Part shown: positions 1,587 to 4,391 of the stretch, piece after piece
Layout of the letters: every line of letters starts with the position of its first letter
Numbering within the stretch: position 1 is the first letter of the stretch
Virus record (IMG/VR): IMGVR_UViG_3300028607_000568
Location: 1-6,036 of that record
Length of the DNA stretch: 6,036 nucleotides
Strand: one strand, 5' to 3'
Position numbers and translations under genes: made by a program
The notes under the pieces: generated by a model
The model's input: the letters and a program-made list of their open reading frames with translations, nothing else
Databases searched by the model: none
What the model was told of the DNA's origin: nothing

Positions 1587-1741
1587 TGTATGGAAGTGAT
1601 GAATGCGATTGTAGTGAACCAGCCAAGGGTTCAGAGGAAGAAGAATGTGTTTGTCTCGATTCAGGAATGTGTGAATGCACTGAGGAATTTTGTGAATGTA
1701 CTTTATGCGAGGGGGTAACAGATGACTACAACTACTCATAA
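1586..1741 (+). CDS. 51-aa acidic Cys-rich, metallothionein-like peptide
   Basis: Missing from the ORF track. MYGSDECDCSEPAKGSEEEECVCLDSGMCECTEEFCECTLCEGVTDDYNYS has 9 Cys (four CxC plus one), 16 D/E and 1 K. TAATG overlap with the upstream stop; SD AGGTGA at 1573-1578. Confidence 0.78.
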   Translation: MYGSDECDCSEPAKGSEEEECVCLDSGMCECTEEFCECTLCEGVTDDYNYS

Positions 1742-1961
1742 AATAATAGTTTATACTTCTATTGGTTGAGGCCCATGCATGGCAACCAAGTCTTGGTTGC
1801 GTAAGAGAGGTTATGAGTTTACTGAGTATAATATATCAGAGAATCAAGAATATGCAGATGAGTTACTTAAAAAGGGTTTTAGAGTAACTCCAGTAGTTAT
1901 GATAGGAGATACACCGATTGTTGGATATAGTCCAACGATGTTAGAAAAAGCATTGGCATAG
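1722..1961 (+). CDS. Glutaredoxin/NrdH-redoxin-like selenoprotein, 79 aa, UGPC active site (TGA 1767-1769 read as Sec)
   Basis: Reads MTTTTHKIIVYTSIG-(TGA)-GPCMATKSWLRKRGYEFTEYNISEN...GFRVTPVVMIGDTPIVGYSPTMLEKALA. The first beta strand (IIVYT), CxxC position, cis-Pro motif (TP) and IVG(Y/F) of the Grx fold are all present. SD GAGGGGGT at 1709-1716 precedes ATG1722. The ORF-track start at 1779 lacks the active site and has no convincing SD. Confidence 0.88.
1779..1802 (+). promoter_or_regulatory. Candidate bacterial-type SECIS hairpin
   Basis: GCAACCAA (1782-1789) pairs perfectly with TTGGTTGC (1793-1800) around the loop GTC, which starts with G and has 20 nt between it and the UGA. The stem can extend via U1780-G1801 and A1779-U1802 with G1781 bulged. 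Confidence 0.72.
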
Positions 1962-2417: not shown

Positions 2418-4391
2418 ATGAAACTATCAGAATATTTACCAGATGTGCCAGTATTAGCACAACAAATGACTAGTTTGAATAATCAGATTGATCTGATGCA
2501 GTTGATGAAAGCAAGTGGGGGGGCAGAGACAGCTTCTGCGCCTATGATTGGATTAGATCATGTAGTTAATACATGGGTTCGCCATCAAATGGCATATAGG
2601 CAACAACTAGTACAAGATTTACAAACAATCTGTATGTCAGTACAGGAAATACGTTCCCCATTAAATCACATTACGTCGGAAGTATTTCGGAGAGGCTTGG
2701 TATGGGAAGCTAAGACTGATGATCCAGATACCGAAACAAAAGAAACGTTAGAAAAGTTCATGAAAAATTGTAATTCTTTCTCCCAAAGTTTGGAAGAAGT
2801 ACTAAGACAATTCCATTTTGATTTAAATTCAATTGATGATGCGTTCTTATATTTGGCTAAGGAGTATTATAGTGATGGTGAAACATTGCGCTCTAAAGTT
2901 AAAGAAATCAGACGGCTTAATCCAGCCTTGGTCGAGTTCGATCTTGATCAGGCTGGCTTACCTAAGAACTCGCATTTTATATGCCCACTCCATAGAGAAG
3001 AAGTCAATGAAGCACCGGGAGGTTGCCAAGACCCCGATTGCAAACGGGAATTGCAACCCGTTATGTACAAATACTACCATAGGAACCAGCATGTCTACTT
3101 GTTGGAACATGAAGTTATCCACGTTTCTAAGTTTTCCCCTTCGGAAACTTATGGTTGGAGTCCAATACTTACGGTTTTTGAAAAAGGATTAACGCTTATA
3201 GGAATGGATAAAAATCTTTATAGGTATTTCTTTGAACGAAAAATGCCTGCATCAATGATTATGGTCACTACAGATGATCCAGAAAGTCTTAGACGTGAAC
3301 GTGAACATATTGCTGCACAGACTAAGATTGATCCCAATTTTATTCCTATGGTTGCTGTATCAGCCCGTAGTCAACGAGGTCGCGTAGACCTTGTGCGTCT
3401 TTTTCATACATTACAAGAGATGGATTATCTTCCAGTTAGGGAAGAGATACGTGAACGAATTGCAGCTATGTGGGGAGTTACTCCCGCATGGCAAGGCGCA
3501 CCAGAAGCATTTGGGGGGCTTTCTACACAAACACAGCAATTAGTTGTAATGAGTCGAGTAGTCGAGTCTGATCAACGCCTTATACAACAGAAAATTATTC
3601 CTGCTATTTTAGAAGCTTTTGGTGTTGATGATTGGGACTTGAAGTTGCCAAATCCAGAGGAGAAGGCAGAGGCCACTAAGGTTAGTTTCTTACAGCAACG
3701 AGCGCAGATAATGCAAACGATGGCACAACTTGGTTTTATGTTTACATTAAAAGAAGAAGGGGTTGCTATGCAAGACGCTGAATTCGTTATTTCTGGTGAA
3801 ATGGTTCCGAATGCTCAAATGCAAGCGGAACAACAAGCTATGCAATTAGCCCAACAAGAACAGCAATTCAAGATGCAAGAACAACAACAGCAGATGCAAG
3901 AACAACAAATGGGAGCCGCTACTGGTGGTGGTGAAGAACTACCCGCTGGCCCTGAAGGTGGGGCCATCCAAGCAATGCTTAAAGCTGAAGGGAAATTTAA
4001 TGGGCGCACTGGTGGAAGAACTCCTGATTGGCAGGACAAAGCCCCGAACGAAGAACGGGACATTGATGAATATGCAGAAGCACGAGCGCATAAAGCAGAG
4101 AATAGAAATTGGGGTATTAAAGATATTGGAGGAGGTCATCCCATCAATAAGACATGGATGGGAGATTTAATGCAGAAAGGTTTTACGAGTCCTGTAATTA
4201 AAGAAGTAAATTCAGATGGGTCTAAACTTTGGTTTTTACAGAATGGCATAGACTTTGTTGCTGATTTAGGGCCAGCCGGTGTTTTAAGTATTGAGAAAGC
4301 AACCTTTTCAAATGCTATTCCGCAACATTCTAAGACTCCTATGGACACTACACCCTCTACAATAGATATAACTGATGAGGATGATAGTTAA
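2418..4391 (+). CDS. Phage portal protein, HK97-family-like, with a putative Zn-binding insertion and a long Q-rich C-terminal extension
   Basis: Portal-like motifs appear in the expected order: DLNSIDDAFLY; KEIRRLNPALV; EVIHVSKFSPSETYGWSPI; YFFERKMPASMI; EMDYLPVREEIRERIAAMWGVTP (compare D/E-M-x-F...IARAFGVPP); QQKIIPAIL. Confidence 0.85.
   Translation: MKLSEYLPDVPVLAQQMTSLNNQIDLMQLMKASGGAETASAPMIGLDHVVNTWVRHQMAYRQQLVQDLQTICMSVQEIRSPLNHITSEVFRRGLVWEAKTDDPDTETKETLEKFMKNCNSFSQSLEEVLRQFHFDLNSIDDAFLYLAKEYYSDGETLRSKVKEIRRLNPALVEFDLDQAGLPKNSHFICPLHREEVNEAPGGCQDPDCKRELQPVMYKYYHRNQHVYLLEHEVIHVSKFSPSETYGWSPILTVFEKGLTLIGMDKNLYRYFFERKMPASMIMVTTDDPESLRREREHIAAQTKIDPNFIPMVAVSARSQRGRVDLVRLFHTLQEMDYLPVREEIRERIAAMWGVTPAWQGAPEAFGGLSTQTQQLVVMSRVVESDQRLIQQKIIPAILEAFGVDDWDLKLPNPEEKAEATKVSFLQQRAQIMQTMAQLGFMFTLKEEGVAMQDAEFVISGEMVPNAQMQAEQQAMQLAQQEQQFKMQEQQQQMQEQQMGAATGGGEELPAGPEGGAIQAMLKAEGKFNGRTGGRTPDWQDKAPNEERDIDEYAEARAHKAENRNWGIKDIGGGHPINKTWMGDLMQKGFTSPVIKEVNSDGSKLWFLQNGIDFVADLGPAGVLSIEKATFSNAIPQHSKTPMDTTPSTIDITDEDDS
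3816..3911 (+). repeat. Gln-rich low-complexity coding tract with a 17-nt direct repeat at 21-nt period
   Basis: Encodes QMQAEQQAMQLAQQEQQFKMQEQQQQMQEQQM. AGATGCAAGAACAACAA occurs at 3871-3887 and 3892-3908. Confidence 0.85.

Follow-up and report, generated by a model that had tools for sequence, protein, structure and literature searches.

A predicted bacterial-type SECIS element in an NrdH/glutaredoxin-like redoxin gene of a tailed virus

The window analysed here is the whole of a 6,036-nt contig of a tailed virus, IMG/VR UViG_3300028607_000568. It contains a gene for an NrdH/glutaredoxin-like redoxin whose open reading frame (ORF) includes an in-frame UGA, and this codon is followed closely by a hairpin at positions 1782-1800. 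Comparison with related sequences suggests that the hairpin is probably a bacterial-type selenocysteine insertion sequence (SECIS) in a phage gene for a selenoprotein, and we put the probability of this at roughly three in four. Relatives that keep the UGA also keep the reading frame and the hairpin, and the hairpin is lost where the codon is one for cysteine. The features of the gene and of the hairpin are as follows.

1722..1961, + strand: redoxin gene, NrdH/glutaredoxin-like, 79 codons, with UGA at codon 16 and the motif U-G-P-C (translation; profile matches).
1709..1715, + strand: Shine-Dalgarno-like GAGGGGG, 6 nt ahead of ATG 1722 (read from the sequence).
1767..1769, + strand: in-frame UGA, the proposed selenocysteine (Sec) codon, in place of the N-terminal catalytic Cys of CxxC (TGA in 32 of 32 distinct Sec-type genes).
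1770..1781, + strand: spacer from the UGA to the base of the hairpin, 12 nt, codons Gly-Pro-Cys-Met (sequence and fold).
1782..1789, + strand: 5' arm of the upper stem of the putative SECIS, GCAACCAA, Ala-Thr-Lys codons GCA ACC AA- (fold; inverted repeat).
1790..1792, + strand: apical loop GUC, in which G1790 is the third base of the invariant Lys codon AAG (fold; inverted repeat).
1793..1800, + strand: 3' arm, TTGGTTGC, made up of the third base of Ser, the Trp and Leu codons and the first base of Arg (fold; inverted repeat).

The ORF runs from the ATG at 1722 to the TAG at 1959-1961, and the TGA at 1767-1769 is the only one in frame. In relatives of the gene a GGAGG-like stretch (which encodes K-G-G) likewise lies just 5' of the start codon. 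Profile searches were made with the post-UGA piece, 1770-1958, as the only query. This piece matches the Pfam family Glutaredoxin (PF00462) from profile position 11 (E 7.9e-10; 39.2 bits, cut-off 22.9) and the thioredoxin domain PHROG 22. Its best NCBIfam match is NrdH (TIGR02194; E 1.5e-13, from profile position 12), where the score of 50.8 bits lies below the cut-off of 85.75, only the post-UGA piece having been scored. By both PF00462 (position 11) and TIGR02194 (position 12) the redoxin domain starts directly after the UGA. The best solved structure is PDB 1h75, E. coli NrdH, and in this alignment residue 3 of the piece (Cys) pairs with chain residue 14 (C14). Because the UGA lies three codons before the Cys that pairs with C14, it corresponds to C11 of E. 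coli NrdH, the first, nucleophilic Cys of CxxC.

A protein search for relatives gave 24 clusters, 23 of which are represented by ORFs of 54-61 residues that begin just past the redox motif. They start there because gene callers stop at the internal TGA; members are cut to a 60-residue ORF and the family is hidden in current annotation. The DNA of the relatives was taken from IMG/VR, JGI metagenomes and GTDB genomes. This gave 32 distinct Sec-type genes (29 distinct 60-nt stretches) on marine viral and metagenome contigs, and TGA is at the same codon in all of them. Sequencing error as the source of the TGA was considered and ruled out, as the codon is found in 29 independent assemblies. Upstream of the TGA and in the same frame, all relatives have a start codon and the strand I-x-V-[FY]-T-S-x-G. 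The codons of this segment vary while the residues are kept (four codons each are used for Thr -4, Ser -3 and Val -6), which suggests that it is translated in frame with the rest of the gene. The family is deep, with branch lengths of up to ~0.7 substitutions per site and identities to the window that go down to 46-48%.

These data bear on the possibility that the TGA is a true stop codon, in which case the real gene would be the 60-residue ORF from ATG 1779, or the locus a pseudogene, and the hairpin would be a transcriptional, RNA-stability or DNA-level element. Public gene calls agree with this, in that they start at the post-motif Met in 23 of 24 database entries. However, the protein sequence that the 10-15 codons upstream encode in this frame is conserved while the codons themselves change synonymously, and several members have no Met at that position (they read CLATK, CTATK, CAMTK or CKMTK). 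The shorter product would also miss strand beta-1 and the first active-site residue, and there is no T-run 3' of the hairpin. We therefore regard a true stop as highly improbable.

The hairpin itself has a stem of 8 bp and a loop of 3 nt, and the distance from the UGA to the loop is 20 nt. The original prediction, made from the window alone, had described it as a perfect 8-bp stem with a G-first 3-nt loop 20 nt past the UGA. These coordinates are exact, and RNAfold gives the hairpin as both the minimum free energy (MFE) and the centroid structure (-13.9 kcal/mol for 61 nt and -10.6 kcal/mol for 44 nt). The accompanying claim that there is no comparable hairpin elsewhere was borne out by an inverted-repeat search of the 6,036 nt, in which this is the only perfect repeat of at least 8 nt with a short spacer. 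Hairpins of equal strength that obey the loop and spacing rules are found at 0.57% of in-frame positions taken at random from these phage genes. When synonymous codons were resampled, p was 0.008 for the window sequence, with a median p of 0.0225 across sequences.

The bacterial SECIS (bSECIS) consensus (the Zhang and Gladyshev model, summarised in PMC13188914 Fig. 2A) has a loop of 3-9 nt and an upper stem of 4-16 bp, a G in the first two loop positions that is usually followed by G or U, a UGA-to-loop distance of 16-37 nt and an MFE of -7.5 kcal/mol or lower (PMC13188914). The window hairpin agrees with all four criteria of this consensus (loop 3 nt, stem 8 bp, G first, 20 nt, -10.6 kcal/mol), and the loop with its closing A-U pair, A-G-U-C-U, fits the pattern N1-G-[G/U]-N-N2 (PMC13188914). 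It is like known bacterial elements in that it lies within an ORF, directly follows an in-frame UGA and has a small loop with G then U. The minimal E. coli SECIS needs a spacing of 11 nt, to which the 12-nt gap here is similar, and the loop A-GUC-U resembles that of E. coli fdhF, A-GGUC-U, but is one G shorter. Unlike in fdhF, the upper stem has no bulged U. The element also differs from the bacterial prototype in that its possible lower stem is not conserved in a fixed register, in that it is found in a phage genome and in that its 5' arm can also form a conserved alternative helix with a stretch that includes part of the UGA.

The original prediction named conservation of the hairpin in TGA-bearing homologues as a test, and the hairpin is present in all 29 of the 60-nt stretches. 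It has 6-8 bp, starts its loop 19-20 nt past the UGA and has a G within the first two loop positions. The loops are 3 or 5 nt long and read GUC (21 sequences), GGC (2), AGAUG (5) or AGGUG (1). The loop G (alignment column 24) is invariant (29/29) and is part of a G then G or U arrangement in 23 of the 29, the other six being the AGAUG and AGGUG loops. The codons of the stem are strongly constrained. Thr +6 is encoded by ACC in 25 of 26 cases in comparison with 10% genome use, Lys +7 by AAG in 26 of 26 (30% genome use) and Ser +8 by TCT in 18 of 18 (27% genome use); elsewhere in the redoxin gene Thr, Lys and Ser have common codons.

The upper helix, formed by columns 17-23 with 27-33, is 87% paired over the 29 sequences. 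Within it, the pair 17-33, which joins the second base of Ala or Met to a silent Leu third base, covaries (C-G in 14, U-A in 11, mismatch in 4), and the U-A state is found in two separate clades. This is the one compensatory change in the stem. Its covariation score exceeds those of all 500 shuffles and of all slid registers, although the kinship of the sequences makes the support modest. As judged from these alignments, the hairpin is maintained by synonymous-site selection.

Cysteine forms of the gene provide a control. There are four distinct Cys orthologues from two sub-lineages, all in the same syntenic slot, after the ribonucleotide reductase and before a 150-residue gene that precedes the portal. 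They have TGT or TGC at the position of the UGA and read C-A-P-C or C-S-P-C where the Sec forms read U-G-P-C, and the motif is followed by the same peptide, (M/K)ATKSWL. The peptide is encoded by GCT ACG AAA TCT TGG TTA or by GCT ACT AAA TCG TGG CTA/CTG, and the ACCAAG/CUUGGU complementarity is lost. A qualifying hairpin is absent from one of the four and has only -1.3 kcal/mol in two and -1.2 kcal/mol in one, in comparison with a mean of -5.1 kcal/mol for the Sec forms. The hairpin is therefore not equally present in Cys homologues with the same peptide, which was the other comparison that the original prediction had proposed. Taken together, the conservation in 29 of 29 sequences, the codon constraint and the absence from the Cys forms suggest that, as had been predicted, the hairpin supports Sec decoding. 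Such a natural pair of Sec and Cys orthologues, with the same peptide in different codons, is also a ready design for tests of the stem bases.

One further candidate for a Cys control was dropped. The only full-length 'Cys homologue' of the first protein search, P0009, proved to be chimeric, with one part from a bacterial glutaredoxin 3 and the other from the viral gene. It is the gene at 652-879 on a 1225-nt ENA contig (L044), with a bacterial LysE gene on its left and a phage gene on its right. Over its first 33 residues it is identical to a marine bacterial glutaredoxin 3 of 85 residues (CIHC motif), the remainder is 87% identical to the viral family, and the junction lies at a shared 20-nt stretch, GAGTTTACTGAGTATAATAT. 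P0009 is either an assembly chimera or a real recombinant.

The same comparisons bear on whether TGA might be reassigned genome-wide or host-wide (code 4 or 25, to Trp or Gly), with the hairpin as an accident of the peptide. Stop-codon recoding does occur in some phages and candidate phyla. Here, however, TGA ends 25 of 198 ORFs of at least 100 aa. Read with the standard code, the genomes have a coding density of 82%, and no coding-strand gene except the redoxin has a conserved internal TGA. The redoxin gene itself uses TGG for Trp, and no suppressor tRNA was found in >2 Mb of related loci. Reassignment would also leave both the synonymous-site constraint and the loss of the hairpin in Cys forms unexplained. 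It is thus largely refuted, and we give it hardly any weight.

Three further features concern pairings outside the upper stem.

1773..1782, no strand assigned: palindrome CCATGCATGG, judged coincidental (palindromic in 3 of 29 related sequences).
1809..1812, + strand: GGTT, possible lower-stem partner of GGCC 1770-1773, with a register that is not conserved (fold).
1762..1768, + strand: upstream UUGGUUG, which spans the last bases of an Ile codon, the Gly codon GGU and the first two bases of the UGA, and can pair with the 5' arm at 1783-1789 in place of the 3' arm (helix comparison).

The original prediction had included a possible bulged lower extension of the stem. Pairing of GGCC 1770-1773 with GGTT 1809-1812 is seen in the fold, but in a fixed register the lower helix is only 57.6% paired among the relatives, and the RNAalifold structure does not contain it. 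Pairings of the type GGNCC...GG form in individual relatives, with shifting registers. The palindrome had been proposed as a competitor of the stem; it is present in the window, but the 3 of 29 relatives in which it is palindromic do not bear out such a role.

The pairing of 1762-1768 with 1783-1789 is better conserved. Of 25 distinct Sec-type sequences, 22 can form this alternative helix with 6-7 contiguous pairs and two others with 5; the helix is interrupted in one and broken in all four Cys-type sequences. In some cases it is the MFE fold. The Gly codon before the UGA, which contributes to it, is GGT in 26 of 26 cases in comparison with 37% genome use. Once a ribosome covers the UGA, the SECIS pairing alone remains possible. 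The alternative helix could represent a switch or a codon-context effect, and if the hairpin is a SECIS, it might add a regulatory switch to it.

A bacterial host that uses Sec had been suggested from the hairpin alone. Its bacterial nature is now supported by gene content in an 85-kb relative, which carries the Sec gene and has a portal 84% identical to that of the window. It encodes sigma-70 regions 2 and 4, a DnaB-like helicase, a DnaG-type primase, a family A DNA polymerase and a bacterial-type RecA. A tRNA-Tyr of 88 nt is present in the same genome, and a long variable arm is the bacterial form of this tRNA. The only cultured relatives of the window portal are haloarchaeal tailed viruses, at ~28% identity. 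An archaeal host, as might be read from this kinship and from a relative binned with Ca. Nitrosopelagicus, would have weakened the SECIS reading; it was rejected on the basis of the sigma-70, DnaB, DnaG-type primase, family A polymerase and RecA genes and the 88-nt tRNA-Tyr. Magroviruses carry RadA, MCM and AEP (PMC5434244). Identity with this group was also rejected, as the related genome has bacterial-type replication genes. Taken together, the sequences point to a bacterial host.

Searches of other genomes added one sequence. Among 185,579 species genomes there is only one copy of the redoxin, on a 3.9-kb virus-like contig of an Alphaproteobacteria metagenome-assembled genome (MAG). No match came from scanning genomes with the redoxin alignment, and cultured phages gave none either to the window by megablast or to TerL.

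Several observations weigh against the hairpin being a SECIS. Its folding energy is unremarkable in comparison with dinucleotide shuffles (z = -0.37 for 61 nt and -0.22 for 44 nt). The loose bSECIS criteria alone are satisfied at 16.7% of random in-frame positions and are therefore weak evidence alone. Because the energy is unremarkable and the loose criteria are common, the case rests on the comparison with relatives. Here too there are points on the other side: synonymous resampling gives a median p of 0.16 for the 48-nt MFE, and the ATKSWL peptide itself supplies part of the complementarity of the arms. A single stem pair covaries, with about two independent events, and the Cys forms are one clade and hence represent one switch. 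An Rfam search up to E 10 returned no family at 1767-1812. ARAGORN found no tRNA-Sec or suppressor tRNA in >2 Mb of related loci, the only tRNAs being tRNA-Leu(UAA) and one tRNA-Tyr, and SelA, SelB and SelD were not seen among the large ORFs read between 18.5 and 77 kb of the 85-kb genome. With no Sec machinery seen in viral DNA, the phage would depend on that of its host. Finally, the cellular bins of relatives disagree. The 3.9-kb contig in the Alphaproteobacteria MAG has the Sec gene and the hairpin, while an 87-kb relative without the redoxin gene is in a Ca. Nitrosopelagicus archaeal MAG; the latter is probably a binning error.

The most serious alternative is that the UGA is read through independently of Sec, by a near-cognate tRNA (Trp or Cys), with the hairpin as a generic stimulator or ribosome pause. 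A small amount of full-length redoxin would then be made, with Cys (active) or Trp (inactive) at the position, together with a 15-residue peptide. It is favoured by the lack of Sec machinery and tRNA-Sec in the viral sequence examined and by the conserved alternative helix, which includes the UGA and hints at regulation beyond a plain SECIS. On the other hand, TGA is one transversion away from TGT or TGC, yet it has been kept across lineages at about 45-60% identity, which is difficult to reconcile with Cys as the intended residue, and Trp at the nucleophile position of CxxC would abolish activity. The position, size and G-containing loop of the hairpin match the bSECIS consensus, and Sec/Cys pairs at UxxC are established in glutaredoxins. 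We consider Sec-independent read-through unlikely, though clearly less so than a true stop or a reassigned codon, and prefer a bacterial-type SECIS.

If the hairpin is a SECIS, it would be expected to act as follows. With the UGA (1767-1769) in the A site, the hairpin would start 12 nt downstream, just outside the mRNA channel. Host SelB, with GTP and Sec-tRNA(Sec), would bind the G-containing apical loop and deliver Sec in competition with release factor 2 (RF2). The product would be a redoxin of 79 residues with the active site U-G-P-C. It may serve as electron donor for a phage B12-dependent class II ribonucleotide reductase, which relatives encode one or two genes upstream; this role is suggested by the protein family and by the gene neighbourhood in related contigs.

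Relatives have the genes in the order TerL, NrdJ, a gene of ~470 residues, the redoxin, a gene of ~147 residues and the portal. The reductase is of the class II B12-dependent NrdJ type (TIGR02504, 649 bits; cut-off 400). In the Cys forms the redoxin directly follows the reductase. The window begins inside the ~470-residue gene (1-459, as judged from its translated start and the family consensus), so its own reductase gene would lie outside the window, and extra small genes are inserted ahead of the redoxin. The portal gene is at 2418-4391 (PHROG 18178, E 3e-41). Taken as a whole, this arrangement may reflect a widespread lineage of marine tailed phages that have a genuine selenoprotein beside a B12-dependent reductase and hijack host SelB and tRNA-Sec through a phage-borne SECIS. 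We put this broader proposal forward tentatively, as something a little short of an even chance.

Sec-glutaredoxins with UxxC and a bacterial SECIS are known from marine metagenomes and from bacteria (PMC1088965, PMC2398784, PMC13188914). The present family has in common with them (Clostridium Grx; 'Grx' and 'Grx-like' of the Sargasso Sea and Global Ocean Sampling (GOS) data) the PF00462 fold, Sec as the first residue of UxxC, the existence of Cys homologues and an origin in marine metagenomes. In contrast with them, its nearest profiles are NrdH and YruB-like redoxins rather than classical glutathione-dependent glutaredoxins, and its motif is the thioredoxin-like U-G-P-C. Its members are on viral or short metagenome contigs beside a portal gene, although the published families may include these sequences.

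The redoxin also resembles E. coli NrdH (1h75) and the NrdH-like glutaredoxins of phages. It has a length of ~75-80 residues, a strand followed by CxxC and an xATKxxL helix, and a C-terminal G-[FY]-x-P. Like NrdH it is encoded near a ribonucleotide reductase. This is the ordinary arrangement, and the selenium is the unusual part. The differences from E. coli NrdH are Sec for Cys and GP for VQ in the motif, and a neighbour that is class II NrdJ and not class Ib NrdEF.

Selenoproteins of viruses have been described in poxviruses. These are the glutathione peroxidase homologues of molluscum contagiosum and fowlpox viruses, and the fowlpox SECIS lies within the coding region, according to a 2021 review of viral recoding (PMC8310308). 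In the passages of the review that were searched, only these two poxvirus glutathione peroxidase genes are described (PMC8310308). Like them, the gene studied here would be a virus-borne selenoprotein gene that is predicted to depend on host Sec machinery. The poxvirus genes are host-captured and use a eukaryotic SECIS and SBP2-type machinery, whereas here we have a bacterial-type element, a redoxin and a tailed phage. A 2021 survey found few or no viral sequences in the selenoprotein families of GOS (PMC9402790), and neither a 2026 review nor the 2026 BSepDB paper mentions phages or viruses. A keyword search of the literature found no report of a natural phage-encoded selenoprotein, but its coverage was limited and this is not proof of novelty. 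The kind of element, a bacterial SECIS in a redoxin, is thus already known, and its genomic context appears to be undescribed.

If the reading is true, this would be the first documented family of phage selenoproteins. Insertion of Sec would mean that phages, like poxviruses, carry selenoprotein genes together with a cis-element to exploit host recoding. The gene would then mark uncultured phages as infecting Sec-using bacteria, which would be a rare sequence-based clue to host range. With a Sec redoxin beside a B12-dependent reductase, selenium, besides cobalamin, would be tied to nucleotide synthesis in marine viruses.

Some observations were made on other genes of the window and of its relatives. 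The ~470-residue protein (L063:8310-9749 and homologues) gave no match in Pfam, PHROG or NCBIfam. Hydrophobic segments lie in its N-terminal part and the C-terminal part is rich in Gly; contigs with the Cys form lack its gene, as does the relative without the redoxin. At 473-1048 there is a single ORF of 191 codons, made up of a hydrophobic N-terminal part of 93 residues and an FdxA-type 7Fe ferredoxin. The ferredoxin part starts at 752 with AGGAGG just before it. In the relative L046 these are two separate genes, which suggests that the upstream stop is missing in the window. The 152-residue protein encoded at 1128-1586 has a match to PF18022 (E 3e-10), a family of C-terminal domains from ricin-type lectins and agglutinins, which is unusual for a gene of a phage head module. 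It is followed at 1586-1741 by an ORF of 51 residues that is rich in Cys, Glu and Asp (10 Cys), is without a family match and shares 20 nt with the beginning of the redoxin gene.

The group is abundant in the marine viromes of IMG/VR, where 209 contigs have a relative of its RecA and 435 a relative of its capsid protein. The IMG/VR scans gave about 30 contigs with the Sec redoxin, and some relatives have tRNA-Leu(UAA). Lastly, 3' of the portal in three relatives (L056 12656-15328; L052 12577-14823; L057 4513-5911) there is an ORF of ~90-100 residues that ends in TGA. The ORF after it, ~415-437 residues long, lies in a different frame and overlaps it, which may reflect either a programmed frameshift or a plain overlap of genes.

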